64,000 nt of DNA from Lepidodermella squamata (Eukaryota; Animalia; Gastrotricha). Location: the NCBI GenBank assembly GCA_047495785.1, contig JBLDXI010000009.1:992001-1056000 (forward strand). The letters are read 5' to 3'. Below, piece by piece: positions 5,497 through 57,795 of this stretch; the stretch's first letter is position 1, and each line of letters starts with the position of its first letter. Made by a program: the position numbers and the translations under genes. The notes below the pieces were generated by a model. It had not been told where the DNA came from, did not search any database, and saw nothing but the letters and a program-made list of their open reading frames with translations.

Positions 5497-6765
5497 ATGG
5501 ATCGCTTCAGCTGGACTGAAAAAGCAATTTATTCTGCTTTAAACGCTTGTGTAACTCTTGGAGGGGTGACTTTATACGATGGTGATGTTAAAACTGGCTT
5601 TGCCGATGGAGAAGTGCGAGTGAGCCCCAGTCATCTTTTCTGGGCCAAAGACTCTAAATACATCAGTCTCCCGATAAGCTCGATAGTTTTAGCTGAGGAG
5701 GTTAGCGAAGGCTTGTTATTGTCAAAGAAATACTTCGTCATACTTCACCTCGCGGCTGCCCAACCCGATAAAGCTCCTGGCCCATCCACCTACAGCCAGT
5801 TTCATCAAATCAAACTGCGATGCAAGTCTGCTCAAGCGACGAACTCAATTTGCACGGCAATTAAAACCACATTGCAGTCCCATTCAGATAAAGCGTCTGC
5901 GTCCGTCAGCACTGCAGCTGCTGCTACTACTCCTGCCCAGTCTTTGAACCTCCGTGGTGGACTTGTTCGAATAGAACAAGACCTTCAGAAAAAAGATGCC
6001 GCTGCCTCTCGTGACATAGCTGATGCTTTTCAAGATTTTAAAAACTTGATGGGTCGAGCGAATGACATGGTCGAGTTAGCTAAAACTATTGCGGAGAAAG
6101 CCAAACGCCAATCACAGGCGCTGCCCACCGAGCAAAGCAAAGATAACCTTACCAATGACGAGTTGTCAGAGTTCAGGTCTGATTTGCTAGCGCTTGGTGT
6201 CTCGGGCGGAGTATCAAAAGATGATTGTTCATCTGAATCCAATTTCCATGTCCAGCTTGCATCAGAAATGTGTCGACTCCTTGAACCTATTATAAGGAAA
6301 TCTGGGGGTGGCCTGATGTCACTTACGGATGCTTATTGCCGGTTGAACCGTGCCCGTGGCTTGGACCTTGTCTCGCCCGATGATGTTTGTCTTGAATTCA
6401 ATCATGAATTATCTCATCCTTGATCTGGTTTGAAATTTTAATAGGTCCTATCTGCTGCGAAGGTCATGGAGAAACGAAACATGACGTTGCGCATGCATCA
6501 ATTCCATACTGGCGTGCGATGCTTACGTCTTGCTGATGTTGATAGCCGCAAACTCTGCATAGAAACCATGCGTTTACTTGACGCCCAGCCCAAAGGCTGC
6601 TCGATTGATACCTTTTCTGTTTTGTTGTCCATACCTTTCGCAGTTGCGCGCGAGAGACTGTTTGCGGCTGAGTCAGAGGGCTTTGCCTGCCGAGACGAAT
6701 CTGCTGGTGGCTTATTATTCTATCCGAACAAGTTCATACATTTCGAACCTACAGTTGCCTTTTAG
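5497..6765 (+). CDS. VPS36: ESCRT-II subunit VPS36/EAP45; two exons, intron 6385..6444
   Basis: N-terminal MDRFSW...[15 protein letters not shown] domain; [15 protein letters not shown]; [21 protein letters not shown]; C-terminal CRDES..GL.FYPNKF. Confidence 0.95.
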
Positions 6766-6847
6766 CTTGCAGCTTGGCTTCATTTCAGAATAATTATTTA
6801 TTAATTATTGTCCGTTTGATGATTTTAGATTTTTATAAGGACATAGA

Positions 6848-7404
6848 ATGGCTGGTGGGTGCAACTTTATCAAAGCGACTAATAATTTACCATGATACAC
6901 TCTTTTTAGAGTCGGAATCCTGCAAGAAACTACGATGGATTGCCGAGCTAGAATTTGTCCAAATGCTCTCAAATCCGTGGTATTTAAATCGTAGGTCAAT
7001 ATATGTTCTTCCGTTCAAATTTCTCTTGACAATTTTTTTTGAAGATCTAGCCCAAAATGATTATTTGAAAAGGAAAGAATTTATCAATTACCTGAACTAC
7101 TTGCAATACTGGAAGCGCCCTGAATATGCTCAGCACCTAAGGTATGAAAATATACTATTGAAGATATTGATCCAAGTTCGAATGAAATTCAAATAGATTC
7201 CCGCAATGTCTACATTTCCTGGACCTTCTTCAAAATGAAGAATTTCGAAACAACATTGCTAACCAGCAAGTCACAAGGTTCATCGACGATCAGCTGCTTC
7301 TCCATTGGCACAATTACGCTCGTCGCCGGCAAAGATTGCTCGACAGCGAAGCTGCTAAATTCGAGAAGGCGAATGCTTCTATCAAGCCACCTGTCCAACC
7401 CTAA
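6848..7404 (+). CDS. MED31: Mediator subunit 31 (SOH1); four short exons
   Basis: [19 protein letters not shown]....[17 protein letters not shown] and [16 protein letters not shown]. Joined across short GT-AG introns, with a 7-nt first coding exon (ATGGCTG) and stop TAA at 7402..7404. Confidence 0.93.
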
Positions 7405-7577
7405 CTTGACTGTTTTGTTATTTTTATTATACCGGTTGCTCATTTCTCTCTAAGACTACTGTGGCAAATAAAAAATGGATGTGCTTTTCAATCTTGATTT
7501 TATTTTATTTGATCAACTAATTGTTAAATGAAAAACATTAACGAAACCGGTTGAAGTGACCTGAATCCTATTGGTAT

Positions 7578-12830: not shown

Positions 12831-12879
12831 ACGGCACTAATGAATAAAGACAGGTTTATATTTCTAGCCATCAAATTTA

Positions 12880-16003: not shown

Positions 16004-18172
<2,169 letters not shown>

Positions 18173-25270: not shown

Positions 25271-25948
25271 ATGAAACTTCCTCTCTTTATTATCACTATT
25301 GCCGTGCTGAACATCGCCGTGAGCGATGCTTACTTCATTGCCGTAGATGCTCACACGGAAGAGTGCTTTTATGAGCGACTTACTTCTGGCACTAAGATGA
25401 CTCTGATGTTCGAAGTTGTTGAAGGCGGATTTTTGGATATTGATGTTGCGGTTTGTTTACATGATTTACTCCAATGACGGCGTAACTGAACTATTTCATG
25501 TTTTCAGGTACTTGGTCCAGATAACAAATCCATTTACTCAGGTGAACGCGAGTCAAGCGGCAAGTATACATTTGCTGCTCATATGGACGGGCTTTACAAA
25601 TACTGCTTTGGTAACAAAATGTCCACTATGACACCGAAAATTGTCATGTTCAGAGCTGACGTGGAAACGAAGCACGGCCTCAAAATCGCTGCGGCACCCG
25701 GCGAAACGACAGATCCTCAGCATCTGAAATTGGAGGAAATGATTTCGGAGCTTTCAAATGCTTTGACGAATGTTAAGCATGAGCAAGAGTACATGGAGGT
25801 TCGATCGCGTGTTCATCGTGAAATCAACATCAATACGAATTCTCGCGTTGTGATGTGGTCATGCTTTGAGGCAGTCGTTCTGTTGGCAATGACGATTGGT
25901 CAGATCTACTATCTCAAGCGATTCTTTGAAGTTCGTCGTATTGTTTAA
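25271..25948 (+). CDS. TMED2: p24 beta cargo receptor TMED2; intron 25451..25507
   Basis: [70 protein letters not shown] and [12 protein letters not shown]. Confidence 0.97.
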
Positions 25949-37100: not shown

Positions 37101-40100
37101 CGCGATCTCTCACAAAAATGACGTTATCTCCTTTGCCGTTTACTGTGCAAGGTGATCAAGAAGTGATTTGTGTCCTTCAGCGTTTCGATGACATTTCATC
37201 TCAATTCGTTCCGATTATCAGTTTCCGCGTTCCCTCTGAAAAACCGTTGAATGTGCAAATAGAACAAAACTACGTTCCATCGGTTTTGTATCGCATGATT
37301 TTAAAACAACCTGTGGCTCCTCCAATGCAAGTCGAGGCCAGTGCAGTGCAGCCAGAAGCCGTACCACCGCCGGCTACACTCGCTGCATGTTGCTGCGTCG
37401 ATTCCTGCTTCTCAAGCAAAGTAACCCCGACATTGACCTTCATCGCTTCTTTGTCAAGGATCGAGGTAACATTGGCGCATCGCTTTCCTCCTGTAACTCC
37501 TGCGGCAGCTAAGGTGCTACCATTTCCAGCTGTGCAATCGAGCCGTAGCTTTCCACCGCAGCGAATTGTAATGGCGAAACTATCCGACGTTGCTATTCAA
37601 GCCCGTGAACAGCCAGATAAAGGCACATCTGTCGATTGCCGGCTGTCTGTGTCAGTTTCATGTCTGAATCCTCGAGATATGTCCTACTGTGATATTGTTG
37701 ATGGGGCAGTTCATTTTAATCACATTTATAGCCATGTGGCCCTTGCAACAGACATTGAATTCCATCGCTTAAATATCGTGGTGAACGACGTGTTGTTGCG
37801 AAATCTTTATATCTGCGTCAACCGTCTGCTTTCGAAATGTCTTCCCCAGCATGAAGGGGGACAAGCAGCTGAGATTTCAAAACTGTCGTGTCAAGTCCCC
37901 AACTCGTTTCTGTGCAATTTGACTTCCGGAAGTCTTGTCATCTCAGACTTCGATCCCAATATGCCAGCGCCTGACATCAAAGTCGAGCCACAGCAATGTG
38001 CCCCCTTTCATTCTCATTCTGTCTACTTGTCATGTGATCATTGGCCTGTTGCCTTGAGTTTAGCCGAATGGTTCGAAGCCGTTGATAAAAAAGTCGTTCG
38101 CGTGATGCCAAACGAATCTCATGCTTTGATAATTTCTAAAGAAATCATCACAACTGACGACAAAACGGAAATAACCTATTTGGGGGTATCATCCTCCTTC
38201 GTCGTGGCTAATTGTTTGAACGCTTCTTTTGCCGTCAAGTGTCTCCAAGAATTCACGGTTTCAGCTATGCCTTTGTCAATCACTTCAGCTTCTTCCATTG
38301 TAAAAATCCGGGACGATCAACTTACTTTTGAATTCACAGCTGCTGATGGACTCTGGGCTTCCACCGCTCCTGTTAAATTGCGGCTTAAAACAGGCTCCTT
38401 CGCTTTCGTTGCAATGAAGGGAGCGACAAGTGATAAAAGCAGATCGTCTAATTCAGAAGCATCATCGTCAACTGGAATGTTTACTATGGTTGCTTCCGTC
38501 GTTGTTGAAAAAATCGAGTCATTTTACCACGTGATGCTACTTATTTTGCCACCTTTTCTGTTTGAAAATGACTTTCCTGTGCAAATGAACGCTATTCTCA
38601 CGAATCCTCATCGAGGAAAGGTCATGTGCGCGGTAAGAAACCTGAATATCTCCGCTTTAATGCCTTATTTTTGTTATTTTTCACCATCAGCTCAACTCCC
38701 TCAACACTCCTTATCCATTTTGTGATATTTTTCATGATGAAATGGTGCATTTGGCAATATCGGCAACATCAGAGCTGACCGAAACGAATTCATCCACGCC
38801 GCCTGTTACATTTTCTCTCGATTCGCTTACTGATGTTCGAGACCGTATCCAACCAACTACTGTAGAAAAGGCTATTCAGACGGTATCTAATTGGCTGAAA
38901 TCAGTTTCGAAAAATACTGTCTCTAAATCACCTGCAAACATCAATCTCGTTAACGAAGCCGCCATTCAAATCGTTTCTAGCCGGGTGTTCCCGTTTGCTC
39001 CAAGTTTGAGCGTTAAACTGACCCCCGGCATCCAAATTGTGAACTCAACCCCGATTCCTTTGGTTTTATTGAGTACTGACGGCTCTGCTATTAGCATCGC
39101 CGCGAACTCTACAATTTATGCTGCGCGGCTGATGGCTGGAGTCAAGCTTGGTTATTACGATTCCAACGTTCTCTGGCAATCCAAGCCAATCGACGTCATC
39201 CTTGAAGCTGATAAGGATGATGTGTTTGTTGTTGACGATGAAAACACAGATTACGAGGCCGAGTATCGCGAAAATTTTTCCGCTGATCGAATCACTCTGC
39301 CGGCGAACAAAAGCTGCCGGCTGGGTATAGTGATCCCACCTCAACAAGTGGAGTGTCTGCTAGTTATCTCTTCGAAAATCGTCACTCAACAGTGTTTGGG
39401 CAGTGAAAGCCAAGTTGCCGTTCTCAATTTGAGCTCATTTTTGTCTGTCAAAATGCAATGTGAGATGATCGGCAAAGTATCTTGCCAATATCAAAATGAA
39501 TCACCGTCACACAATTGCCCTCCCTTGGCTACCTACAATGTGAATCATGGCGTTTTGACTGAAATGCCCTTCGTCGCCATTGCCTCAAATGTCGTCGAGT
39601 CTAGCTACAATGACGCCGTTTACTTCTCACTGAGCGGGGCTCCGTCAAGTTTGCGCCTGCCATTCTCAGGCGTTCCAAGTCGATATTTGTCTGCGGTTGA
39701 ATCTGATCATGTATTGGCTTCTATCTCCACCTGGGTGTTTCATCGCGACGATAAGGACTGGCCTAGGGCGAAAAGGCTTGTAATTGGTGTTCAAGACAAC
39801 GCGTTCCATGATGTAACTATTCGCAATATGTGTGATTTTGACGTTCATATACGCGAAGCTCGAATGGAGACCCCGCCATCTCACGATATGTGGTGTTTAC
39901 CTGCGGGCATGTCGCTGGAATTGGCTTTTTCGACACCTGATTCTACGGCGGTTCGGTTTGGCGTCGCTACTCCTGGCACTGCTGATTTAATTTGGTCGCA
40001 AGAAGTAACTTTGCCGTCTGTTTTAAACAGCACATCTACTTCGTTGAACGCGGGCGGCGCCAATATTGTTTCGTTTGGGCAAAAATCTGTCTGCGACTTG

Positions 40101-42236
40101 CAAATGACAATCGACGACTATTGCGACACAATTCCTCAAATCGTCATCAAAAACCTGATCAAAGCTTTGGTCGCTAAGCAGGAAAAGAAAAACGTCGTAG
40201 TCCAGCCTGCCACAAAGGTGTCTCCAGTTCCGGTTTCAAGGCGGTCTTCTTCGATCAGCGCCCGCGTCTCTTCGCCTACTGCCTCGTCCATTCACTCGAA
40301 TCGTTCGGCTCGTCGAACAAAAACATTTGTATGTCGAATTGAAAACGTGCAAATCATGTGTACCGATAGTGGAAATGTCACGCCCCGCTTTGTTTTTACC
40401 ATGGATGGATTGCAGTTTGGTGCAAGCATGTTTGCCTTCCGTGGCGATGAATTGCGCGAAGGTTGGTACTGTTTATGAATATTTGAAGTAATTTATCCTC
40501 TTTTATTTTTAGCAACTGCTGGAACGTTTCAAGCGTCAGCCAAACGGATGCAGCTGGATAACTACGTTGCTCAGGGTTCGAAGTCTTCTAACTGCACATT
40601 CCCCGTCATACTGCTGTCTTCTGCTCCCGATGGTTCTCCCCAATGCTTCCGGTTAAGTGGAACTTTGTTGAATCGTCTTGGGGAAACAACCATCACGTCT
40701 TTGGCGCTGTCTCCTGGCTCGTTTACAGCCTTTGTCGAGGACATCAACATGCGTGATCTGGTTGATTACATCCTGCGATTGGTTTGCGCTTTTGAGAAGG
40801 AAGATGTTAGCCTATCTTGCGCTATTCCGCCCAATCCACTACCGTTGCGTGGCTTTTCCATCGACGCTTGCAGTGTAGATCTGACGGTTCGAGCGTCGCT
40901 ATACGTTTACATTGCAGCCAACCGGACGCCACTGAATTTGAGCGCCTTTAAACTGAGTTCGACTTCATTGACATGGTCTCAGTTGATTCATCGTCTGACT
41001 ACATTCTATGTGAGAGGTGCCATTTTCCGAGCTGGTCTCTTGTTTGGTTCGTTGAATATCATCGGACGGCCGCTTTCTCTCGTCAGAACAACGACCTCTG
41101 CCGTTCGCGACATTTGCTACTCGCCGTTTTCTGGCCGAGGTATACTTTTGACTGCTTCTAGCGCTGCAAGGAGTGTTTTGGCCGATGCCATTTTGAGCGT
41201 CGCCGACTTTGCTGAATCAGTGGGCCGAAATGTCAACTTCTCCAGCCAACCACCGATGTCACCTGCTCATCAGCCGGAGACTGTTTTTGAGGGCTTGAAG
41301 CAAGGCTTTACGGCCCTGGGAATAAGTTTGGTTGGCGCAATAGGTGGTCTGGCTGGTCGCCCGATGGAGGAGATTTTGAATGCCTTGGAAGCGTCTGATT
41401 CGGACCAAACTACTGTTGCTCGAAGTGGCGGATTTTCCTCCCTCGCTCGCGTTTCTGCTGCTGCAACTCGTGGTGTTGGTCTCGGAATTGTTGGCTTGGT
41501 AACGCAGCCCATGGCCGGTATTTCTGAATTTGTTGCCGTGACAGGTCATGGTCTATTGAACTCGGTTGGGCAACCTAATTTGCCTCGTGTCGCTGATATG
41601 CAACCATTCTTCTTCCAAAAAGACAAGCTAGATTCAAGGAACGTTTGGTATCGAATCGAAGATTCTCTTGCGTCTTTCCATTTCACAGGTGGTCACGTGA
41701 TTGCGTTGCTTCGGACTGAAGTCTCCAGTATCTGCGTCATTTTGTGTCGCAAAACCTTGTCACTGTTCAATTTATCCGAAAGAATTTTGCAGCAGTCATT
41801 TAGCCTATCGGATATTGAAATCATTGTTGAAGAAGCTGGGGATTCTTCTTCCGGAAACAATGTGATCAAGGTTTATCGAAAACTGTCTAGCTCTCGAACC
41901 ATTGAAGATGAGGATAATGGTCATCATGGATTAGGCGATGAGATTGATCTTAATCGGTGGCGTGTCGAAGCTTACCTTGCATCCTCAGCCGGTCCTCTTG
42001 CCACAGAAACCAGGGATGCGGTGAGATCGCCCCCTACTTATGGCATCTATTCTTCCGCTCTGTCAGTGCAAAAATCAAAGCAGAAAGTGTCAAATTCATC
42101 AAATTGGCAGAACCAACAACCACTTTGTTCTCTGGTCATTCATAAATCGCATAGTCTGAATAATGTGACGCGATTTTTGACGGTTTTTCTCTATTTGCGA
42201 GATGTCCTTTCTCCTAATTTTTCTGTAGATAAATAG
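31113..42236 (+). CDS. VPS13B: VPS13B/COH1 bridge-like lipid transfer protein; ~7 exons, including one of ~6 kb
   Basis: Chorein N-terminus MFKLESYLSPFLL.....YVK.....FKLSLWEGDAV..KLDLRL, SGRIQELRIHVPWTKLGSEP and YRCSLQCR. Internal NPALQWN, DDLR and WSYPEPR.LT. C-terminal QLDN, GAIFRAGLLFGSLNIIG and GISLVGAIGGLA..P. Confidence 0.92.
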
Positions 42237-42548
42237 ACACAGAGAATATTCAACCGGGAATTTAATTTTTGTTTGCTTGATCTGTTCCTGGTGCTGAATT
42301 ATCTGTGACGAATTCTAAAGCGAGCTATGCTCCATTTATATTAACTATGCGGAGGTTGTAGTCAATTGTGAGTCTTTTGGGTTTAACCTATTGTTTGTGA
42401 CTTTCTTGCTGATCTTTCTCTTGAAGAAGCATGTTTAAAGATTAACGATATTTATTCTGAATTTCTAAATTTTCTGAGAGTATAAAAGGTGAAGGAATGT
42501 ACATGATTATGTTTTACTACTAGGAAATATTTAATTCCATTAGATAAG

Positions 42549-45470
42549 ATGGATGCCGTGAGCTTGGCTCCGGATGCGGATCTTGACGAGTCGATTGACA
42601 GAGCCGATTTTTCCGTCGAGTTCACTCCTGAAATTTTACAGATTCTGGACTCAGTTCTCCCAAGCGAAGATCCCTTAGATCGTCCCGATTTCGACATAGT
42701 TGCTTACATCAATCAAGTGTTTCCCAACGAGCAATCGCTTGCCAATATCGATGGTGTTATATCAGAAGTGCGCGGCAAAATACAGTAAGCTTCACCTACC
42801 CTCGTTCGTGCTTCAACTTCAAATTATTCTTTCAGCAAACTGGACGACGATATTATTGCCGTTGTACGTGGACAGGCTGTAGCTGCGACAGCAAATGATG
42901 GTGCCGATGACGGTAGAGCGGCGTTGAGGGAAGCCGAAGGAGCCATCAAAAACCTCATCGGAAAAATCGTCGATATTAAATGTAATTATTTACTTTTGTT
43001 TGCTTTATCAAAATAATCATCTTTATTTGTGCGTCAGCGAAAGCCGAGAAATCTGAAGACATGGTGAAAGAAATTACTCGCGATATAAAACAGCTGGACC
43101 AGGCAAAACGAAATCTGACGCTATCAATTACGGCGCTTAGTAACTTAGAAATGCTTGCGACTGGCGTGGATTCCCTGGTTCAATTGTCGAAGCAGCGAAA
43201 ATACGCTGAAGTTTCCAGGATGCTGCAAGGTGTTGAGAACGTAGTTCAGCAGTTCGGTAACTACATGCATATTCCTCAAATTCGGGAAATGGCCGATAAG
43301 GTCAAAATGATCCAGTCGGACCTTTCGCAGCAAATAATGACGGATTTCAAAGACGCTTTTCAAGGTGGCGGGCTTCGACACGGATCCGGTCCAACGCAGC
43401 AGCAGTTGACAGAAGCGTGTCTTGTCGTTCAAGTCTTACCGCAGCGTGTTCGCCAAGAATTGCTGACATGGTTCATACAGCTTCAGCTCTCCGAGTATCT
43501 AGTACTTTTCGCTGATACTCAAGAATCGGCATGGCTAGATAAAATCGACAAGCGTTTTGGTTGGATCAAGCGGTTACTTGTTGACTTTGATGATACATAT
43601 GCACCGCTATTTCCTCCTAGTTGGAATGTTACCGAGAGAATTTGCGTCGAATTTTGCCGGACAACTAGGAATGAACTTTCTAAGTTGATGCAAAGGCGCT
43701 CAGCCGACATTGATGTCTCAACTTTGCTCTTTGCTATTCAAAAGACTACAAACTTCGAGCAACTGGTCGCTAAAAGGTTCGCTCGTTTGAAAACAAACAA
43801 GTGTCAATTCATGCTTCTTATGTCTATAGGTTTACTGGTGAGTCGATCGAGAATCGCGACCCTACCAGATCGCCATTTGCTGGCATAATTTCTAAATGTT
43901 TCGAGCCGCATCTGGTTGTCTACATTGACGCTCAAGATAGAAACTTGGCTGAGATGATGATTAAATGGCAGTTGGAATTACGCCAGCAGCAACCTTCGAA
44001 CACCTCACTCAGCGGTGGCGTTCTTCCACCTGACCCTCTAGCTGCCGCAGCCGCATCTGAAGGCTCCAATGTCTTCCGATCGGCTGGAGATTTGTTCCTT
44101 TTCTACAAAGATTGCCTGCGTCAATGTACTTCGCTGAGCTCTGGACAGCCGATGCTGGAACTCACCCGTGTTTTTCAAAAATATCTACGAGATTATGCAC
44201 AGAAGATTTTGTCTGCAGCTCTTCCGAACCCTCGGCAGCCGTCATCCGCCAGCGCTACTCTTGCAGCTTCGGTGGCTGGTAAAGACTTCAGCACTGCCGC
44301 AGCTGCTGCTGGATCTCTGTTCGGGTCGCTATTGAAAGACGAACGAACTGGACAGTCGTCTAGCGATGCCATCAGGCTAACCGACGGTGAACTGGGACGT
44401 GCCTGTGCAGTCCTGTGTACTGCCGAATATTGCTTGGATACCACGGGACAGCTTCAAGAGAAGCTGAAGGAAAAAATTGACAAAGAACTCGTCGATAAAG
44501 TTAACCTAGCGCATGAGCAAAGCCATTTTAATAAGTAAGCTCGAGTCTAAACTCAATAATTCGTTTTTATTTCGACTTTACTCACAGTGCTATTGGTCAA
44601 ACGATTCAACTACTTGTTGCAGATCTCGAATCAGCCTGCGATACCGCGCTATTGGCGATGACACGTTTGAATTGGAATACGGTCGAGACCGTGGGAGACC
44701 AGTCGCCTTTCGTAACCACCCTTGTCAGCCACTGGAGATCAACCGTGCCAGTTATCCGCGCCGGTCTCAACGACTGCCGGCAGTATTTCACGCAATTTTG
44801 TATCAAATTCGCAAAGTAATTTCAATTTTTCCGCTATCGTTTTCATTTCATATGGTTTCATTTTGTGTGTAGCGTATTCGTAACTAAGTACGCGCTTCAT
44901 TTATTCAAGTGCCGCTTGGCCGGAACTATGGGTTGTGAGCAGTTATTGCTAGACACGCATTCTTTGAAAACTGTTCTGCTCGATTTGCCTAACTTGGGAA
45001 GCAGCGAAAGTCGAAAAACACCAGCTTCCTACACAAAAATTGTTGTGAAAGGTATGACTAGGGCGGAGATGATTTTGAAGCTGGCTAACTTCCCGATTGA
45101 ACCTGCGACAACTTTTGTTGATAACTACGTTCGATTGTTGCCGGATGGCGACGCGTCAGAGTTCCAAAAGCTGTTAGAGATGAAGGTCGGTTGATAGCGA
45201 CATTATGTTGTCAACAAATTTAAAATCATTTTTTCCTTTTTCTAGTGTTTGAAGAAGTCGGACCAACCATCTTTGATTGAGCTTTACAGACAAAGGCAAC
45301 GGCAGCATTCGGGTTCCGTGTCGGAAGTTCCTGCGCGTAGCGAGGCGGAGAAGCCTACCGCTTCATCGGCATCGATCGCTGTGGTTTCACCAGGTGACAG
45401 TAGCAGAGGTGACGTTCCGCCTAGTCAATCGTTGAACAAATTGGAGAAATTGATCAAAAGGCATCTATGA
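42549..45470 (+). CDS. VPS53: GARP/EARP tethering complex subunit VPS53; ~8 exons
   Basis: [84 protein letters not shown] and EFQKLLEMK. Confidence 0.96.
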
Positions 45471-46181: not shown

Positions 46182-46700
46182 TTATTCGAGCTCTTCCGAA
46201 CGCAACCGGGCGTTGGCGTTGGTGACCTTGATTCCCAGTTGTTGAGCACGTTCGACAATGGTCTTGCGCTGACGGCTGGATACAGCGTGGAAGATTTCCG
46301 CAGCGTATGAGCCGCTCTGCATCAACAGGACTTCAAGATCCTGGTCAATAACGGTGTGAGCAAAAATTTCGCCAAGCCTAATATATCATGAACATACCTT
46401 GATGTTGCGCACAACAACCTTCCGGAAACCATCGGGACACACGTGCTTGGTGCGCTGGGCGGATCCATAACCGATCTTGGGCATAAGATATTGACCCTTG
46501 AACTTGCGGCGAACGCGGTTATCAATACCATGAGGCTTGCGCCAGCTAGGCTGTGGTTAAAATTACGTCTTCATTACAACGTCATCGCTTCACAAGAAAT
46601 AAAATACCTTGAGCTTGTTATAACGATCAGACTGATGGCGGATAAACCTCTTCGTCCGCTTTTTGACGACCCTCGGCTTGGACAATGGGCGAATGGCCAT
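46182..46700 (-). CDS. RPL32: 60S ribosomal protein L32 (eL32); three exons
   Basis: Spliced translation [31 protein letters not shown]|[30 protein letters not shown]...|DLEVLLMQ...[26 protein letters not shown]. Not in the ORF track. Confidence 0.97.
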
Positions 46701-46767
46701 CTTAATTATCTAATCACCTATGAGTAATAATAACATGGTAATATTGATGTAAAATGGCACAATTAAA

Positions 46768-47932
46768 TTAAAAATGCTTTCGAGGCCGACCCGTATACTT
46801 CGAATTAGGTCTGGCATCCTGCCCTTTAGCAATACGGCGCTCTTTTTTATCCATAATCCACTGACGTGATTTAACAGAGGCTCGAGGTTTCTTAGACGAG
46901 TAATGGCTTTTCACATTACGGCTGTAAGGTATATGTTCCCCGTCCTCAACATCCTCGTCCAATGTGGAGTTCATAGCTTTTGGAAGCTGGTTCATTGAAC
47001 CACCAGCAAACAACACCAAAAAGATTCTATTAAAACATCGTGACCATAGAATGCGAAAAATTGAATGTGATAAGATACAACTTTTTAGCTTTGGTACTTT
47101 CGGGGAAGTCGACAACAACGCCGCCGCCAAAACCTGCACGCATAGCTTGTGCAGTCATTAGATCCAGCTAAGAAGAAAATATATAATTAGCATACAATTT
47201 CTTACAGAATTATCTACCTGTGAATCGTTTTCAGGATATACTTGAAACACGGCTCTAGAACCATACGCCTAAATATATACTGACCTCAAACACCTAACAT
47301 CGAGTCGGTCCGAAGATTTACCATGGCAGAATAGAGAGTTGAAAAAAATGTTGCGAATCGCTTTATAGGGTTGTGTTTCGCATTGTCCGAGTTGCACAGC
47401 CACTGTAAAGCTGAGATACTGATCACTCCGTCGAACATACCAGGTCTAAACGGAACACCTAAGCCCATATCAGCAAGCACCAGATCACCCTCCACCTCTC
47501 TCTCAATCGCAACATCCAACATTGCCGAACTAATATCCATGCCTATCCATAAATGACCAGCTTCTGAAATGCAGTCGCCGCTGAGCCCCGAGCCACACCT
47601 GTAGTATCATGCGTCTCAAAAATTATGAAAACAATAAATGATCGAAGCTCACCCAATATCCAATAGCAACCTCTGTTCATCATCTTCCGGAAGATTCAAC
47701 AATTCTAAAGCTCTCTGTGAAAGTTGTTCTTGAACTTCGATGATTCGAGAGCTGCAAGCAACAAACAGTTGAAACAATTCGAGTTTGACTAGCTCTTCTT
47801 ACTTTGAGGAATATTTTGCAGCTTCCGTTTCATCGTAAAACTAAAGTAGAAAGATGCATTTACTCATTCACATTGAATGTTAATCATTACCAGATCAGGT
47901 GGACCCACGTGCTCAGGACGCTTTGAAGGCAT
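46768..47932 (-). CDS. BUD23: 18S rRNA guanine-N7 methyltransferase BUD23/WBSCR22; multi-exon
   Basis: [14 protein letters not shown]|[15 protein letters not shown]|[37 protein letters not shown] and SKYTGRPRK. Confidence 0.96.
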
Positions 47933-49741: not shown

Positions 49742-51400
49742 ATGGCCCAAGAGAAGCGATCTGTTATTCACTTTGGAAGCCTCGAGGAACACTTTGCTAA
49801 AGAACAGCAGTCAGCTAAGGACCAACCAGAGGCAAAGGAAGCTCCTCGGGATGTCGATGCTGCTGAAACCATGCCCATGGATCAATCTCAGCCTCTTACT
49901 GATGCTCAGATGGCTTTGCTGCAAGATTTGGAAATGCGCAAAAAAGCTAGAGCAGTCCTGGTACCAACCGACGATGCTGAAATTAAATTGGCTCTACGGC
50001 GAATGGGAGAGCCTATTTGTTTATTTGGCGAAGGTCCCGCTGAACGACGCGAGCGTTTACGTGATTTAATCGCAAGGAGAGGATATGACCAAAGCAAGAA
50101 AGAGGAGGCTTCTCGACGTGATGAAGCTGCAGCAGCGGCAGCTTCGAAGCTAGAGTTGGGAGTATCATCTGATGCTGCCAATATTCTGGGGAAACTGGAG
50201 GGTGAAACGTCAAAACGATCTGTTGAACAGGACAACGCAAATGTTACGTGGTACCACGAAGGTTCGCAAGCCCTTCTTGAGGCTCGGTTGTGGTTAGCCT
50301 CCCATAGTGTCGCCAATGCCCGCTCTAGGTTAAAAGATGAACGCGAGTGGTTGAGCCTACCCGCAGCGCAAAGGCAGGCGAAACGGCACGATTTGCGAAC
50401 GAAGCTTACGGCGATGGGCAGCTCTGCGAGTCAGGTTGGAGATAATCGACCTCTCGCGTCAGTTGCATTTAGCGAGGCGGATGAATCGGGAAGCAGTCAA
50501 ATGCTAGCCACTGCAGGTTGGTCCGGATCAGTTAAGCTGTGGTCCGTTCCTGACTGCAACCCTTTGATGAGTTGGCGAGGCCACGCAACTCCTGCTACTT
50601 GCGTTGCGTTTCACCCAGATGCCACTAAACCCCCAGATACTGGTTCCACCGAAATGACGGACTCTGTTGGCGGAACTGTTGCAGTCGCTAGCTGCGCTCA
50701 TGACGGTACTGTTCGTTTATGGAGCATTGATTCGCCCGAGCCTCTGGCTGATTTGGAGGGTCATGCACCTCATCGTGTATCTCGTGTTAGCTTTCATCCA
50801 TCTGGTCGCTTTTTGGCGACGTGCTGCTTTGACTCTTCATGGCGATTATGGGATCTCGAGGTGGGCGAGGAATTGCTTCATCAGGAAGGCCACACCAGGG
50901 CAGTGTATGACATAGCATTTCACCCAGACGGCGGTCTCGCGGCTAGTGCGTCATTGGACTGTTTTGCTCGACTGTGGGATCTGCGTACGGGAAGATGCGT
51001 TCTATTCATGGACGGTCATCAGCGCCCAGTTTTAGGTGTCGATTTTTCGCACGATGGCCTATTAATTGCGACCGCGTCACAGGACAACACTGTTCGTCTA
51101 TGGGATTTACGTCAGCGCTCTTGTTCTTATACTCTACCTGCTCATACTGGCTCGATTTCTCAAGTTAAATTTGGTAGCGCTCGTACTGATGGCAAAAGTA
51201 ACACAGCAGTTGGTTTCTTAGCAACTGCGAGTTACGACGGTACGTTACGTTTGTGGGACAGTCCAAGCTGTGCACCGCTTAGGACTTTGGCTGGTCATGA
51301 ATCGAGGGTCACCTCCGTCGCGATTGCACCTGGAGCTCAAATGATCGCTTCGGCCTCTTTCGACAGAACTTTCAAGCTGTGGACTCCTCTTACCGTGTAA
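49742..51400 (+). CDS. PRPF4: U4/U6 snRNP WD40 protein Prp4; intronless
   Basis: IHFGSLEE; PRP4 motif VPTDDAEIKLALRRMGEPICLFGEGPAERRERLR; TWYHEG; SQVGDNRP; WD40 repeats including ELLHQEGH, WDLRTGRC and SFDRTFKLW. ATG 49742 is preferred over the ORF start at 49661. Confidence 0.96.
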   Translation: MAQEKRSVIHFGSLEEHFAKEQQSAKDQPEAKEAPRDVDAAETMPMDQSQPLTDAQMALLQDLEMRKKARAVLVPTDDAEIKLALRRMGEPICLFGEGPAERRERLRDLIARRGYDQSKKEEASRRDEAAAAAASKLELGVSSDAANILGKLEGETSKRSVEQDNANVTWYHEGSQALLEARLWLASHSVANARSRLKDEREWLSLPAAQRQAKRHDLRTKLTAMGSSASQVGDNRPLASVAFSEADESGSSQMLATAGWSGSVKLWSVPDCNPLMSWRGHATPATCVAFHPDATKPPDTGSTEMTDSVGGTVAVASCAHDGTVRLWSIDSPEPLADLEGHAPHRVSRVSFHPSGRFLATCCFDSSWRLWDLEVGEELLHQEGHTRAVYDIAFHPDGGLAASASLDCFARLWDLRTGRCVLFMDGHQRPVLGVDFSHDGLLIATASQDNTVRLWDLRQRSCSYTLPAHTGSISQVKFGSARTDGKSNTAVGFLATASYDGTLRLWDSPSCAPLRTLAGHESRVTSVAIAPGAQMIASASFDRTFKLWTPLTV

Positions 51401-51486
51401 CATTTCTTATCGAAATAATAAATTCATGTAGCAACTTTGTATCCATGTCTTCTATTGATTTGTATGTTATTGCAGTCTAGATATTT

Positions 51487-52878
51487 ATGGAAAGTGAGAA
51501 AGATGTGAAATACGCATTAATAAGAAATATTCCGCGCAGCCTGCATTCCAAGAATTTGAGAGAGTTTTTCTCTGAATTCATCGAGTCTTCAAAATTTGAA
51601 TGCTTCCATTTTCTTCATCGAGCGGAGAGCAAATTGGATATTGTTGGAAATGTAAACGTTTCCCCGGCGTTGAGCCCATCTCCCGATATCTGTTGCTGCG
51701 TTGCGAAAGTCAACTCAAAGAACTTCGATTTATTCATCAGGAAATACCATGGTAAACCGTGGGGCATTGGCCAACCTCGCTGTCATGTTCAGTCTTTGAA
51801 TACTTCTGGTCTGGATCTTGACAAACTCCAGGAACTTCATCCTCCACCCGTGATGCCCAAGTGAGTTTACGTGCTAGAATTTTTTCTTCAATTTACTTAT
51901 ACTAAATTGTTCAGTGGAAACGTCGGTACGCCTACTAGCGTGTTCGTTGATGAAATTAGGCAATGTAAACTTCCGACATCAATAATCAGCAAACTTGGGT
52001 TGAAGTTTCCCAATTCTACAGGAAGGAAATACTCGAATGTTCCTTTTCGTTACGATGCTAAGAATGAGTCGGACGAAAGCTCCGACGAAGATGCCGATGA
52101 CTGTGAAGAATTTGAGCGTCACGAAGCTAACATGGATGATCCTAGCAATCAAGAAAGAAACCAAGAACGGATGTATGAAGAGCCGCTTGAGGTCGTTTGG
52201 GAGAAGGGCGGTTCAGGGCTATTATTTTACACAGATGCACAGCATTGGGACGAATTAGCTGGCGATTTCGACGCTAAAACCGCTGATGACCATGACGTTG
52301 ACATGAGCGTTTATTACGAAGGCTACGAAGCAGGGGATATGGATGCTCGTCAACGCATTGAAATGGCCGAAAGCGATCGTTTGTCAGCGGGGCTCTACAA
52401 ACCCGAAAGAGATGGCCAACCACCAAAGTCTAAAAAACCGGTTTGGATGAAGAGAAACCGATCGCGATCTAGATCGCCCTCCGCTGCATCAAGCTCAAAG
52501 CCTGTTGAAGGTTTCGGGAAGCATATTTTACAATCTCAAGGATGGAAACCTGGCGAGGGTCTTGGTCGTGACAAGCAAGGCATTCCAGAGCCTATCGAAG
52601 CAGACGGGCAAGGTCCGCGAGATCGAATCGGATTTGGATATCGGGGGTCAAAATTGAATCTACAGGCTGCAGTCGAAGCTGCTAAGAAAGCAGCGGAAGC
52701 ACGCCGTGGGCCACGTCTTATAGCCACAATTTATGATAAGACAACTTCTGATGATAGGGACCCTGGTATGCTTCGAAGAAATGACCATTATCAGCTACGT
52801 TATCGGGGCGATCCCGCATCTCCCACGAGCGTTAAGCCCGATGGATCGACTGGAATGTCTTCAACGGATTATAGATGA
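51487..52878 (+). CDS. GPATCH3: G-patch domain protein 3; intron 51861..51914
   Basis: FECFHFLHR.E, ELHPPPVMP.|GNVGTP, C.LP.SIISKLGL.FP, EVVWEKGGSGLLFYTDAQ.W and D.DVDMSVYY. G-patch GFGKHILQSQGWKPGEGLG....GIPEP. Confidence 0.93.
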
Positions 52879-53122: not shown

Positions 53123-54195
53123 TTAGCTGATTTTGCATTCGATTGCCATTGGGTCACAATCCTCATACACCTTGGAAAACATCAAGCATTAATGAAGGCG
53201 AAGATGGAAACATTAAGCTAAAATTTACCTTGAAAAGCGGGTTGTCTAGGTCGCCTCGATTGCCGGTGTCTGAACCTTCACCTGAGAGGCCAGTTGTTCG
53301 AATGCATGCACACCTTGGGTCAGGTTGCCCCGGACGGTAGTATTTTCTAGGAACACCGCCCCATTCGCGTGTAACGCCTCCACTACCAGGAGCACAAGAC
53401 ACGTAACCACCTTCAGCTTTGCTCCATCGACTATTGCACGGCGGATATTTAACTCTGTCTAGTTCGGTTGCTTCTTTCTCCTTATCACCGGCCTCAGCAC
53501 ATTTATTGAAAGCATCCAAAGCGGCCGTCGGAAGGCCTTTTTCGTCGTAGAACCGGCCCACAAGTCGGCCAAGGTATACATAATTGTCATGATAAAATTG
53601 AGTCCAAGTTTTCAATTCAGCGCATTGATGAGCATCAAAATCAGAAATATCATCGATGAGACCTTCTTCAGTAAAATCCCCTGTCACATACTGAAAAACA
53701 ACAATTAAAACAGTCGTTAACAGGGTCAAAAAACAGTTCTCATACCGCTCGAGTAGCGTCCTTTCCTGAAACAAAATTGAAAGTAAAATTTGAAATCACT
53801 CAAATCGCGTAAAATTGACCAGAAAAGAAACTATATCCACCATCAACGCCGTAGTGTTTTTGACCTTTGGTCACATCAAAAACTCGGCCAAGAACAGATA
53901 AGTATATTATTTTTGCATCTGAAGAGTGGGCTGCAAGCTCAGCAGGTTGAATTATACGAATTTCCGGCTGAAAAAAGATCATGAATCAACCTTATGAATG
54001 ATACGTGTTGGTTATTACTTCGTTTTTCTGGTCAGAAGTTGGTTTCGATGGTTTGTGGAAGGCCATCAGTCCTTCATACAGACCAGGTGCGTGCTCCTTC
54101 ATAGCCAGAAAAATGGGCACGTGGTATCTCGCCACCAAGTAAGCAGCTATGCCCATTGTAGCCGAAAACAGTATCAACCTTAAAGCTAAGCCCAT
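53123..54195 (-). CDS. CYB5D2: Neuferricin (cytochrome b5-like MAPR-family protein); four exons
   Basis: N-terminal signal/anchor; IYLSVLGRVFDVTKGQKHYG..GGYSFFSG; YVTGDFTEEGL; GRLVGRFYD; PPCNSRWS; WGGVPRK; PRCAC. The last exon reads VYEDCDPMAIECKIS*. Confidence 0.92.
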
Positions 54196-54361
54196 TCTAC
54201 AAAACAAAAAATGGCAATTCTGGTTAACATTTATTACCAACATAGGTATGAAGTGATGTTTCTCTCGTAGCGTGCCGTAATTTATTATCACAGATTCACA
54301 ACAAATTTAATTGAGATCTTTTTTTGATGGCTCACAGCTATTGCCATTAATCTAGTAGGTG

Positions 54362-54815
54362 TTATTTTTGCATGGAAAATTGTTCAATAAAATCGTTTTG
54401 CTCGTTTTCCAGACGCTGAAGAGATTCCAACTCAGTTCGCAAACGTTCCATGTGCATTTTCCTTTCAGCAATGAGTGAGCGAAGCTGTTCTTCTTCAGAA
54501 ACTCGTTCTTTCGCCATAGAATTCACCAGATTTCGAGCAGCTATTGCTTTCATTTTTTCAGCTTCAACTTGCTTGGCCGCATTAGATAAAACTCCTTCGA
54601 AAAATACGATGAGCTTTTGAAATTCAGCCATTTCTAAGAGCAAAGATAAAAAGTCAACCATGCTGAATTATGACATCAAACTTACTGTCAGAGAATTCAT
54701 TGGCACAGTCGCGAATCTCGTTTGACAGTTGCGCTGTCTGAGGGTCTAGAATGCGAATTTTCTGCAGTTCATCAATGTACAACCCCGCGTCTTGGAGAGC
54801 TTGGTCAGCTGACAT
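54362..54815 (-). CDS. IFT20: Intraflagellar transport protein 20; two exons
   Basis: AGLYIDELQKIRILDP, EFQKLI, AKQVEAEKMKAIAARNL and ERLRTE.ESL...E.EQNDFIEQF. Confidence 0.95.
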
Positions 54816-55154
54816 CTTTTAAATATTGCAACTAAGAAAAGAATAATAATAAATTGATGCGAATCAGTTTTAAAGATTGTAAAGGAAAAATCGTAGAAAA
54901 ATATTTTGATTCTGAGCATGGCTAGAAATCAACAACCGAAGGCAACAATCAAAAAATTGCACTGATTTGCCGTAGCATTAGGACCATGAGTACAGGATGA
55001 ACCGCCAAGAAAGAATTATTCCGGAGCAAGCGTTGACGCATAAATGATCGAACATTAAAATATATCAATATATCACGTGGAAATCATTCTACAGGCAAAG
55101 ATATGGTTTCAAGTCACGTAAGGTCCCGAAAATAAAATATGATGTCTGCGCCGA

Positions 55155-56571
55155 TCAAACAGGTGGCAGAAATTTTCCAGGGTGACTTTTGAAAAGTCGT
55201 TGCCACCCTGAGCCATTAGGCCATTCCCACTCCGCTACTGAACTCTCTAATATCTTAGTGCTGTAACCAGAAGCCCGAGGCACTAGATAATGACCGGCTT
55301 TAACGACGGGGGGATCTATGAAATGCTCGTGAAGATGATCCGCAAATTCCGTAACGGCGGCGCCTCGCGCCAAAATATCAGGCGAGGCCAGGCAAAGATG
55401 GTAAAATGCCGATAAATGCTGAACCATTTCACACAACCCGACGCCACCGGCATGCGGGCAGACAGGTATTCCAAACTTGACAGCCATCAAAATGACAGCG
55501 ATGTTCTCAGAGACGCCTCCAAGACGACAACTGTCAATTTGCGCGTAATCAATAGCCTTCAACTGGAAAAGCTGCTTGAATATTATTCTATTTTGGCAAT
55601 GCTCGCCAGTTGCAACGCCCATTCCTAACGGCCGGACGGCCTCCGCTATAGCGGCATGGCCTACGGCATCATCCGGGCTCGTCGGCTCTTCAATCCAAAC
55701 TGGATGGAAACCAGCAAGTGCACGCATCCACTCAATCGACTCAGCAACGCCCCAAACTTGATTTGCGTCAACCGCCAAGGAGTTATTGGGGCCTATTTCA
55801 CGACGGATAATTGCGGCTCGGCGTTTATCAGCATCTAGGTCTTTGCCGACCTTCATTTTAAAGAACCTGAAACCCTCAGCGAGTGCATCGCGGCACTTCT
55901 GAGCTGCCTCCTCGTCTGTGTACCCAAGCCAGCCGGCACTTGTAACGTAAGCCGGAACGCCAGTTTCAAGCAGACCTTGCTCTCGCTGTTGTTTGTATAG
56001 TTGGCCTCGCCTTAGAAAATCTAGCGCTTCGTCCTTAGTAACAGCATCTTCAATGTATCGAAAGTCGATTGTCGCTATGAGTTCTTCAGGATCCATTTCA
56101 GCTAACAGGCGCCACAAAGGTTTCTTAGCCTTTCTAGCCCAAAGATCCCACACTGCATTTGTAATAGCGGCAAGAGCCAGGTGAACCACGCCTTTCTCTG
56201 GGCCAAGCCAACGCAGCTGAGGCTCGAAGGCTAGCTCGCGCCAGAAAGCACCGAATCCAGCTCCTGTTAAGAGCGTGCCAACATCTCTTCCAACAACGAA
56301 CGGCGCGTAAGCTTTGATCGCGGCGCATACGACCTCAGTACCTCGCCCGCAGGTGAAAGTAAGCCCATAGCCATGTTCGTGCTTAGAAGTCTCAATGACG
56401 ACATAAGCACACGAGTAATCCTGAATCCATAGACATAACATAAAATTGCTCTCAGGATATTGCTATCCAACTTACAGGGTCCGTGTGCATGGCGTCACTG
56501 CCATGCTGTTCCAGGCTCGTTGGAAACCGCAAATCGAATACTTTCACCCGAATTATTGTTTCAGCTGCCAT
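55155..56571 (-). CDS. ENOSF1: Enolase superfamily member 1 (L-fuconate dehydratase, rTS); two exons
   Basis: DLRFPTSLEQHGSDAMHTDP|DYSCAYVVIET, QLRWLGPEKGVVHLA, FKMKVG, DANQ.W, WIEEPTSPDD, ATGEHCQNR and VCPHAGGVGLCEMVQHL. Confidence 0.96.
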
Positions 56572-56724
56572 TTAAATGCCTAAACAGAAATCGGAAATCC
56601 ATTGAAAATAAGAAACATATTATCTCAGCATTGCAATTGGCAAAATAATATCCGCGACTTTTTCAGTCGTATAACTCATAATGATGAAAATTGCGCGGTG
56701 TTTAGAGGCTGGATAATATCATAT

Positions 56725-57795
56725 CTAGGCAGAGAGTTTGCAAGCAGTCAGAGTATTGTCCACCGTTCCAATGAGAATGTAATCGCCAACTTTTACCACG
56801 CTAGAAGCAGCAGTAACCAACTGGCCATCATCGATGAAAATTTCTTCAAGGTTCGAAAGTGAACCGTCCGGTGAAACAGTAAATTTGCTAACAAAGCTAG
56901 GGACAGTGTGACCACGGGTGACTTGGAGGTGAATGGCGGAATCGATCATTCTGTAGGAACCAGCCAGCCAGAGAGTGTCGGGCTTTGAACCCTTTCCGGG
57001 TAATAAATCAATGTTATCAACAAGGGAAAGCGCAGGATATTGCTTAATAAATTCCAACGAATTGTCTGCATTCCGTGCGTACATGGCTATCGATTTGGAC
57101 CCAGAAAGTCCAACATAAATGGTTTTCGCGTCGGTGGAAGATTGAATGCCATTAGGAATAAACAAGTTCTTCACCACTACAGTAGCACTGATGCCATCGA
57201 AAAACACCACATCGCCGATGGGAAGCATTAAAGTGGATTGAATGAAGTTAATGAGCTTATTTCGTCCACTCATCCAGTTTGTAGCATAAAATTTATAATC
57301 GTCAACCACAACAAGATCATTCAACAAACGGAAGGTCGGGTCGGTAATTCTTTTCAAATGAGTAAGTTTCAAATTATCGAAATCCATTTCGAAAACATCC
57401 ACGCATTCCAAATTGTTGTCGTGGTTCACGACATATAGGTGATACGCCCCGTCAGTAGTTGATTTCCATACATAAATACCATGAGGGTGGAAGGAATCTT
57501 TGGCGAATGAAGAATCAAATGTAAACGGCTCCGGTTTTAGGGAATCGATCACGTTCAGGTTTAATAAAAAAATATTTGACGGAAACTGAGGCACAAATCC
57601 CGAAGAAACGATAGCGATGTTTTTTTCTTCTATCACTTGAATATCTTCTGATCCGTACTTGATGCCAGGAACTTTGTAGCAGTTGCGAGGCCCAAGAATT
57701 TTTGCTGAGCGCCAGACATCCAATACCTCAATCAAATTGATAACGTGGAGGATGAATAGCGAAGCGAACGAAAGGGCTACGATTTTTCCAAACAT
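56725..57795 (-). CDS. Paraoxonase/arylesterase-family lactonase (six-bladed beta-propeller); intronless
   Basis: N-terminal hydrophobic anchor; NC..V.GI..GSEDI, FHPHGI, LYVVNH, NDLV, FYATN, PNGI, LVDNI and C-terminal IGTV.....CKL. Confidence 0.93.
   Translation of the reverse strand: MFGKIVALSFASLFILHVINLIEVLDVWRSAKILGPRNCYKVPGIKYGSEDIQVIEEKNIAIVSSGFVPQFPSNIFLLNLNVIDSLKPEPFTFDSSFAKDSFHPHGIYVWKSTTDGAYHLYVVNHDNNLECVDVFEMDFDNLKLTHLKRITDPTFRLLNDLVVVDDYKFYATNWMSGRNKLINFIQSTLMLPIGDVVFFDGISATVVVKNLFIPNGIQSSTDAKTIYVGLSGSKSIAMYARNADNSLEFIKQYPALSLVDNIDLLPGKGSKPDTLWLAGSYRMIDSAIHLQVTRGHTVPSFVSKFTVSPDGSLSNLEEIFIDDGQLVTAASSVVKVGDYILIGTVDNTLTACKLSA

Follow-up and report, generated by a model that had tools for sequence, protein, structure and literature searches.

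We show trans-splicing for one gene of this animal: the ribosomal protein gene RPL32 receives a short non-genomic leader, joined at the AG acceptor predicted ahead of its first exon. We consider it likely that the animal uses spliced-leader (SL) trans-splicing and that the tight same-strand clusters of housekeeping genes in the window, which is the whole 64,000-nt stretch of DNA analysed here, are mostly polycistronic units. The tightest clusters are probably operons because their genes are separated by almost no sequence and one downstream gene carries the leader. In the mechanism that we propose, RNA polymerase II would start upstream of the head gene of a cluster; at every boundary inside the cluster, cleavage and polyadenylation would finish the message of the upstream gene, the short leader of a separately encoded SL RNA would be joined to an unpaired AG acceptor some dozens of bases further on, and this spliced-on leader would cap the next message. 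The leader would derive from an SL snRNP, and the other nine downstream genes would also be trans-spliced and driven from the promoter of their cluster head.

RPL32 receives a trans-spliced leader

RPL32 lies behind BUD23, the head of the third cluster, on the reverse strand. BUD23 (46768..47932) encodes 284 aa in 7 exons, with 6/6 introns confirmed by RNA, and its message is polyadenylated at about 46753, where the BUD23 contig of run X3 ends in poly(T). RPL32 (46182..46717; ATG at 46700, 134 aa, 3 coding exons) has its own poly(A) site at about 46103. Its first exon starts at 46717, and the acceptor AG (46719-46718) stands 17 nt before the ATG. Only about 35 nt of intercistronic sequence (46718..46752) thus separate this acceptor from the point of BUD23 polyadenylation, a stretch shorter than the median cis intron and covered by RNA in run X1.

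Sequencing runs X1 and X3 (RNA, from different studies and years, 2014 and 2015) and X2 (DNA) were used, the RNA test spanning 5.9 kb with four gene starts. A 24-nt loose end in X1 joins the genome at the A of the acceptor AG (46719), as predicted, and so do two loose-end contigs in X3; the first 7 letters of these loose ends are identical in the two runs. The leader, 26 nt long, ends ...TGCGATTGAATATTAAATTTTCTGAG, its 3' end reading ...TCTGAG without the AUG of the flatworm type; nematode SL1 also ends in -UGAG. In the DNA run the leader is absent from a difference-free contig covering 46597-47179. Even when 3 mismatches are allowed, the leader does not occur in the window; the pattern of a second leader is missing there as well, and a local cis exon is rejected as its source. 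Searches of JGI metagenomes with the RPL32 leader gave 0 matches, a search of the window against Rfam gave none, and the leader and Rfam searches together located no SL RNA gene within the window. The mixed consensus in X3 (agreement 0.68, 17/25) fits a mixture of the X1 leader with another of identical 3' end, and it is probable that two different leaders share the RPL32 acceptor.

The RPL32 acceptor has no GT 45-70 nt upstream, and the genomic form of the spacer is present alongside the leader form in the same RNA sample. Spliced BUD23 RNA also reaches into the spacer, beyond the point of BUD23 polyadenylation. The BUD23-RPL32 operon, with its poly(A) site about 35 nt from the acceptor, is well supported. 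At the 5' end, BUD23 RNA reaches upstream to at least 48194 across 6 upstream ATGs, and this RNA is either an outron or a long 5' UTR. A 92-codon open frame in this region (48033-48311, reverse strand) is unlikely to be an additional gene before BUD23: it has no Pfam match, RNA is lacking beyond 48266, and 47944-48159 is missing from a second haplotype seen in the DNA run.

RPL32 RNA appears to be in excess over that of its head gene. Contig depth in X3 is 1004 for RPL32 and 28 for BUD23, about 35-fold, and the X1 contigs of RPL32 are likewise far deeper than those of BUD23, depth being in both runs poorly suited to ranking. This excess is a hint of an internal promoter, that is, of a hybrid operon; a pure operon would fit the abundance of RPL32 equally well. 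Some downstream genes, RPL32 foremost, may have an internal promoter as well, and the gaps of 217-339 nt elsewhere in the window could hold small ones.

Gene clusters and their spacing

Twenty-one complete genes could be modelled with open frames after splicing at GT/GC-AG introns; with Vav and TRAPPC9, which are cut by the window ends, the total is 23. Introns in the 21 models (n=73) have a median length of 54 nt and are almost always 47-89 nt long, one being 751 nt. Pfam backs the names VPS36, MED31, TMED, PDCD2-like, VPS13, VPS53, methyltransferase (BUD23), RPL32, G-patch and arylesterase/PON, together with fucosyltransferase, GPR107/GOST and the CH domain of Vav. IFT20 and cytochrome b5 domains were found on the orthologues from a relative, and the identities of ENOSF1 and PRPF4 come from named homologues.

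On the forward strand, cluster 1 consists of VPS36 (5497..6765; 402 aa, 2 exons, Pfam EAP30/Vps36) and MED31 (6848..7404; 130 aa, 4 exons, Pfam Med31), separated by an AT-rich spacer of 82 nt (6766..6847) with several candidate AG acceptors. Cluster 2, on the same strand, is headed by a TMED2-like p24 protein gene (25271..25948; Pfam EMP24_GP25L), which is followed after 246 nt by an NAA25-like TPR protein gene (26195..29678; 948 aa, 13 exons; acceptor AG ending at 26171). The Pfam matches of the latter are to TPR alone, and the more specific name is a putative assignment taken from the preliminary description. PDCD2L (29896..31079; 323 aa) begins 217 nt further on and has candidate acceptors ending at 29855 and 29894. 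The VPS13B-like gene (31113..42236; 3596 aa) starts 33 nt past the PDCD2L stop, with an AG directly adjoining its ATG, and VPS53 (42549..45470; 863 aa) follows after 312 nt, with an acceptor AG ending at 42523 and no donor 45-70 nt upstream.

Cluster 4, also on the forward strand, pairs the intronless PRPF4 (49742..51400; 552 aa) with GPATCH3 (51487..52878; 445 aa), whose intron at 51861-51914 is confirmed by RNA. Their 86-nt spacer (51401..51486) contains a poly(A) signal and an acceptor AG that ends at 51475, or alternatively at 51480. An X1 contig (51125-51522) runs across it from the stop codon of PRPF4 to beyond the start codon of GPATCH3, a contig not being the same thing as a single molecule, and the X3 PRPF4 contig ends at 51433, directly past the poly(A) signal; no RNA was found in 48267-49448. 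Cluster 5, on the reverse strand, is headed by an intronless PON/arylesterase gene (56725..57795; 356 aa). ENOSF1 (55155..56571; 453 aa) lies 153 nt past it with an unpaired acceptor at 56580, IFT20 (54362..54815; 133 aa) a further 339 nt on with a strong unpaired acceptor at 54832, and CYB5D2/neuferricin (53123..54195; 284 aa) 166 nt past IFT20 with an acceptor at 54197, 1 nt before its ATG.

All ten in-cluster stop-to-ATG gaps of the preliminary description (33-339 nt) are reproduced by these models, that of BUD23-RPL32 being 67 nt. For NAA25-PDCD2L it had allowed 55 or 217 nt; the open, spliced NAA25 model ends at 29678, which rules out the shorter value and leaves 217 nt. The remaining same-strand gaps are 862, 1520, 1749, 3128 and 3525 nt, and tail-to-tail gaps are 173, 244 and 711 nt. 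Head-to-head gaps (1543, 1575, 1809 and 3781 nt) agree with the 1.5-3.8 kb claimed earlier. A model lacking operons, in which each gene is flanked on both sides by sequence of its own, predicts a mean same-strand gap of about 1.3 kb; under it, the finding that 10/15 are no longer than 340 nt has P ~2e-5, a value obtained with exponential flanks fitted to 4+3 gaps only and a threshold picked post hoc. The spacing is bimodal, as had been described, and speaks for operons. The bias towards the same strand is weak (15/22 adjacent pairs, P=0.07). The claim that cluster spacers are free of transposons is borne out, since no repeated 16-mer occurs in them, but it is nearly trivial because these spacers are shorter than 340 nt. 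The specialised genes do stand alone, as had been stated, but so do the housekeeping genes PPM1D, GPR107 and TRAPPC9, the last at the window edge. Neither of two spacers that were folded was more structured than its shuffles.

Acceptors preceding the downstream genes score like those of real introns, with a mean of 6.7 compared to a random-window median of 3.9, and 0/20000 resamplings reach this mean. A GT 45-70 nt upstream is absent for RPL32, VPS53, ENOSF1 and IFT20 (4/10 downstream genes), and only weak (score <=3) for three others; PDCD2L, CYB5D2 and VPS13B (3/10) have moderate candidate donors at this distance, and CYB5D2 and PON of the relative likewise have possible ones. Good upstream acceptors also precede the solo genes FAM166 and EF-hand, so that an operon need not follow from the presence of a leader.

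Gene order in the relative provides a further comparison. The proteins compared are 52-90% identical, and 5/5 testable in-cluster adjacencies are kept, as against 2/5 non-operon neighbours (Fisher P=0.08); the count omits BUD23-RPL32 and cluster 2, for which no close relative was retrieved. MED31 again follows VPS36 (L034/L035) with a spacer of 58 nt, PRPF4 and GPATCH3 are 53 nt apart (L001), and PON and ENOSF1 are separated by 878 nt.

Operons and competing explanations

The preliminary description had ascribed the clusters to operons resolved by SL trans-splicing. Its leader is now seen on RPL32 in two RNA runs and is absent from a DNA run, while the single transcription unit per whole cluster remains a putative one. 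Transcripts across spacers, which it also anticipated, may be represented by the X1 contig over PRPF4-GPATCH3; the contig of BUD23 in X1 extends no more than 14 nt beyond the RPL32 acceptor, compared to the 31 nt of our bridging rule. The expected leader at AG acceptors is found for RPL32 and none is displayed for GPATCH3. Over the 5.9 kb, a leader is displayed on 1/4 gene starts, with 23 loose ends undisplayed; no break interrupts the RNA contigs at the acceptors of BUD23 and GPATCH3, and contigs lose minor branches. We are fairly confident that the tight junctions, with 33-86 nt from stop to ATG, are operonic, and lean only slightly towards the same conclusion for those of 150-340 nt. A PRPF4-GPATCH3 operon is reasonably supported by the RNA contig across its spacer; a VPS36-MED31 operon is suggested by spacing, acceptors and synteny, and a PDCD2L-VPS13B operon by spacing and acceptors.

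The animal might instead possess a spliced leader and yet transcribe its downstream genes mostly as monocistronic units from compact promoters in the last exon or 3' UTR of the upstream gene, the leader merely trimming a short outron and the clustering reflecting compaction that outron removal enables. The apparent large excess of RPL32 over BUD23, the spacers of 217-339 nt (878 nt for PON-ENOSF1 in the relative), the good acceptors of the solo FAM166 and EF-hand genes, and the internal promoters of C. elegans hybrid operons (PMC4138322) would all suit this explanation. Nevertheless, we regard it as a minority possibility, given that head-to-head distances imply a usual 5' flank of about 0.8 kb or more that the ten junctions lack, that cluster order is conserved in the relative, and that spliced BUD23 RNA does not stop at its poly(A) site but enters the spacer. 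It is very improbable that there is no trans-splicing at all, with the acceptors belonging to 5'-UTR cis introns, the clusters reflecting compact packing alone, and the RPL32 "leader" explained by a far-off cis exon, by an allele or by an artefact of the library. Possible donors do lie at intron distance from some acceptors, the leader is known from a single gene, and template-switch fold-back artefacts are present in X1; against this, the leader is missing from the 17 kb upstream in the window while introns are nearly all 47-89 nt long, the exact join at the AG recurs in two different studies with probably two leaders, the same RNA sample also contains the genomic form of the spacer, and the RPL32 acceptor lacks an upstream GT at intron distance. 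Finally, the clusters might yield read-through or dicistronic messages whose translation relies on re-initiation or internal entry and not on trans-splicing, RPL32 being the exception; the unbroken contigs over PRPF4-GPATCH3 and through the BUD23 acceptor would suit this. The BUD23 poly(A) end within the spacer, the X3 PRPF4 contig that stops at 51433 after a poly(A) signal, and the acceptors of intron strength before downstream ATGs make this extremely unlikely.

Comparison with known systems

The mechanism is already known; what would be new is its instance in gastrotrichs, where the tight clusters are probably operonic. In the literature searched, no paper links gastrotrichs to SL trans-splicing or operons, and the phylum would, if our reading is true, be an additional one having both. 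Gastrotrichs would then be a key taxon for deciding between one and many origins of trans-splicing in Spiralia, because flatworms are their proposed sister group and rotifers and chaetognaths trans-splice. That sister-group placement is given in PMC6468455, and, with a leader that lacks the AUG end of flatworm leaders, the question of origin can be tested by comparing SL RNA genes.

Flatworms likewise have short same-strand clusters of conserved housekeeping genes and several SL variants per species (PMC8629364, PMC12582326), with candidate operons defined by gaps of <=300 nt in parasitic species (PMC12582326) and <=1 kb in Macrostomum lignano (PMC8629364). Their leaders, however, end in a conserved AUG (PMC12582326), whereas the leader here ends ...TTTTCTGAG; that of Macrostomum ends ...TTGCATG and is unlike ours by eye (unaligned). 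The chaetognath Paraspadella gotoi (PMC12460157), although of a different phylum, uses several leaders per gene, as is probable for RPL32, and no operon-specific one. Its operons, recognized by a 250-bp gap criterion, are enriched in protein-metabolism genes including those for ribosomal proteins and exclude signalling genes, and its SL genes often lie in rDNA clusters (PMC12460157). In Oikopleura dioica most ribosomal-protein mRNAs are trans-spliced and the median intercistronic distance is 31-33 bp (PMC7986045, PMC6883708), close to the ~35 nt between BUD23 and RPL32, but this chordate has a single 40-nt SL of unrelated sequence. The order of BUD23 and RPL32 resembles that of nematode fib-1/rps-16, in which a ribosome-biogenesis gene precedes a ribosomal-protein gene (PMC1657053; PMC4138322), and internal promoters can boost downstream genes of nematode operons (PMC4138322). 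Nematode SL2-type operons differ in their spacing of ~100 bp and dedicated SL2, the one spacing measured here being ~35 nt; among the four gene starts covered by RNA, no head gene displayed a leader for comparison.

A more specific joint reading, which we consider unlikely as a whole, is that gastrotrich SL and operons arose apart from those of flatworms, with unrelated non-AUG leaders and intercistronic gaps of ~35-45 nt, and that BUD23-RPL32 has no internal promoter. Most precursors would then shed the BUD23 part as outron, and competition between polyadenylation and trans-splicing would allow one promoter to yield a scarce biogenesis factor and an abundant ribosomal protein. In either case BUD23-RPL32 is a compact system in which to test how a downstream operon gene comes to be far more abundant than its head. 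Operons of this kind also bear on genome annotation, which may fuse their genes or misplace 5' ends. In a tree of PRPF4, the protein from the window and that of the relative together form a long branch outside every named group sampled.

Gene spacing and its conservation

Spliced models of the window (43% GC, no CpG depletion) comprise 21 complete genes and two truncated by the window ends, with tiny introns (median 54 nt) and names mostly backed by Pfam or named homologues. These models reproduce all ten in-cluster distances claimed in the preliminary description, the stop-to-ATG gaps being 82 nt in VPS36>MED31, 246, 217, 33 and 312 nt in TMED2>NAA25>PDCD2L>VPS13B>VPS53 (NAA25>PDCD2L at 217 nt), 67 nt in BUD23>RPL32, 86 nt in PRPF4>GPATCH3, and 153, 339 and 166 nt in PON>ENOSF1>IFT20>CYB5D2. 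The bimodal spacing that it reported also holds, with 33-339 nt inside clusters versus 862-3525 nt for other same-strand gaps and 1543-3781 nt for head-to-head gaps; tail-to-tail gaps span 173-711 nt. If 5' and 3' flanks were independent, same-strand gaps would average ~1.3 kb, and 10 of 15 falling at or below 340 nt has P about 2e-5; the simulation behind this figure is rough, draws on few data points and uses a threshold chosen post hoc. Strand bias taken alone is not significant (P=0.07). The clustered architecture is real, and the proposed division between clustered housekeeping genes and solitary specialised genes survives as a tendency, because the housekeeping genes PPM1D, GPR107 and TRAPPC9 stand outside any cluster. 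Fragments of one or two LINE-type reverse-transcriptase ORFs (RVT_1) at 59104-61480 (-) inflate the head-to-head gap between PON and TRAPPC9.

A relative known from ENA metagenome contigs, with proteins 52-90% identical to those of the window, keeps PRPF4>GPATCH3 (gap 53 nt), VPS36>MED31 (58 nt) and PON>ENOSF1>IFT20>CYB5D2 (878, 180 and 218 nt). Across these three clusters, 5/5 testable in-cluster adjacencies are conserved, versus 2/5 outside clusters (MED31/Ly6 and Ly6/EF-hand, the other three being broken), a contrast that is suggestive only (P=0.08). In the relative, CYB5D2 is followed after 312 nt by another PON paralogue (contig L003, 10149-11231), making a five-gene cluster there; the window lacks this paralogue. 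MED31 has two more introns in the window (6855-6909) than in the relative (L034, 1774), GPATCH3 has one more, and the CYB5D2 intron sets differ too; these differences represent intron gain or loss inside conserved clusters.

A leader on RPL32

RNA was examined over 46100-52000, using RNA runs from 2014 and 2015 and one 2024 DNA run. Data sets X1 and X3 behave as RNA, in that RPL32, BUD23 and GPATCH3 introns are spliced out where predicted; poly(A) tails and a SMART oligo are present, and 48267-49448 is devoid of RNA. The non-genomic 5' leader anticipated at AG acceptors was found on RPL32 in both. In X1, a 24-nt loose end is attached at 46719, the A of an AG that precedes the RPL32 start codon by 17 nt; on the gene strand its 3' end reads ...TGCGATTGAATATTAAATTTTCTGAG, and the leader may extend further 5'. 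Two X3 loose-end contigs at 46719 share their first seven letters with it. Their mixed consensus (agreement 0.68) is the pattern expected if the X1 leader were mixed with another one; as 7% of random sequences would also be compatible, this point is only suggestive. Over 46597-47179 the DNA run agrees fully with the window sequence, and searching the window for the leader with up to three mismatches gave no match. The RPL32 5' end thus bears the signature of spliced-leader (SL) trans-splicing, which is demonstrated for this one downstream gene. By rough depth-bin arithmetic, read-through would account for a small share of RPL32 5' ends in X1 (161 vs ~3900), although contig depth is unreliable for ranking.

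In the VPS13B>VPS53 spacer, the 21 nt at 42458-42478 (+), which lie 70 nt ahead of the VPS53 start codon and have no GT after them, match the leader 3' end (13 nt exact; 19/21 with one gap). The 13-mer occurred in 0/100 window shuffles, and 1/100 shuffled leaders scored equally in this comparison; the sequence is possibly a relict leader of a retroposed trans-spliced message, or chance.

Probable operons and the alternatives

Most likely, Pol II would start at the head gene and transcribe the cluster from one promoter, 3'-end formation would free the upstream mRNA, and an SL snRNP, its SL RNA being the putative leader source, would add a capped leader at the unpaired AG that follows, a few dozen nt downstream. 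BUD23>RPL32 has this geometry of leader, acceptor and poly(A) site. A poly(A) tail terminates the X3 BUD23 contig at ~46753, a site that is not A-rich and lies only ~35 nt from the RPL32 acceptor, so the RPL32 precursor almost certainly starts within the BUD23 transcription unit. Moreover, a fully spliced X1 BUD23 contig crosses the gap and ends 14 nt beyond the acceptor, below the tool's bridging rule. The second transcribed spacer is that of PRPF4>GPATCH3, where X1 contig 51125-51522 spans both the stop codon of PRPF4 and the GPATCH3 start codon; the X3 PRPF4 contig ends at 51433, ~40 nt short of the GPATCH3 acceptor.

The main rival, that the genes are trans-spliced yet separately promoted, is a minority reading that we consider rather unlikely. 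In X3, RPL32 contig depth is 1004 vs 28 for BUD23, an excess which, if real (depth being unreliable for ranking), requires that BUD23 contain an internal promoter or that most BUD23 portions be discarded; nematodes have hybrid operons (PMC4138322). That trans-splicing is absent altogether is very improbable given the RPL32 leader. The claim that SL trans-splicing resolves the clusters stands for RPL32 at its predicted AG, with no leader displayed for GPATCH3. None was seen at the BUD23, PRPF4 or GPATCH3 starts among the loose ends listed (23 more exist), and such assemblers clip short dead-end branches wherever a read-through path exists, so these missing leaders are not evidence of absence.

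Leaders are predicted for the nine other downstream genes too. With a scoring matrix built on the 73 introns of the window, the top-scoring AG no more than 60 nt from the ATG of each downstream gene averages 6.7 bits (equalled in 0/20000 resamplings), compared with a median of 5.7 for true intron acceptors and 3.9 for random non-coding windows, although T-rich spacers somewhat favour the score; head (5.3) and solo (5.1) genes are only marginally over background (P about 0.06). No GT lies 45-70 nt upstream for RPL32, VPS53, ENOSF1 or IFT20, and candidates are weak for MED31, GPATCH3 and NAA25. Moderate candidate donors there mean that the PDCD2L, CYB5D2 and VPS13B sites could belong to 5'-UTR introns. 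The tight junctions are likely operons, as the preliminary description proposed; its extension to whole clusters is unproven.

Known systems and further observations

As proposed, the clusters would work like SL-resolved operons of flatworms (PMC8629364, PMC12582326), chaetognaths (PMC12460157), Oikopleura (PMC7986045, PMC6883708) and nematodes, whose fib-1/rps-16 operon, like BUD23>RPL32, has a ribosomal-protein gene downstream of a nucleolar factor (PMC1657053). The RPL32 leader violates the flatworm rule of AUG-ending leaders, and the one measured spacing, BUD23>RPL32, is closer to that of Oikopleura than of C. elegans. The clusters' interest comes mainly from the lineage. Our literature search, with many subscription papers outside its scope and novelty hence unproven, found no publication on gastrotrich trans-splicing or operons, and the L. 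squamata genome paper (PMC11660948) mentions neither. PRPF4 is ~47% identical to its best named matches, mostly spiralian, and 75% to one ENA metagenome protein, with which it forms a long branch outside the sampled nemertean, annelid, mollusc, brachiopod, arthropod and deuterostome sequences.

Upstream of BUD23, RNA at 47966-48194 (-) reaches at least 260 nt 5' of the ATG, across a good acceptor and six upstream ATGs, and is outron-like. Library artefacts probably explain the fold-back joints near 5' ends (48103/48194 and 49484-49638). In the DNA run, PRPF4 and GPATCH3 carry many heterozygous SNPs, and a second haplotype omits 216 nt (47944-48159) directly upstream of the BUD23 ATG, predicted acceptor included, and diverges upstream from 48271 onward. 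A MITE-like element with ~184-nt inverted repeats (12305-12756) lies immediately downstream of the fucosyltransferase gene, and a short inverted/repeated element sits at 19854-20157 within the window's sole long intron (FAM166, 19810-20560, 751 nt). Between FAM166 and TMED2, a GC-richer stretch (21900-24200), in which several short ORFs overlap and Pfam finds nothing, is possibly a decayed mobile element.
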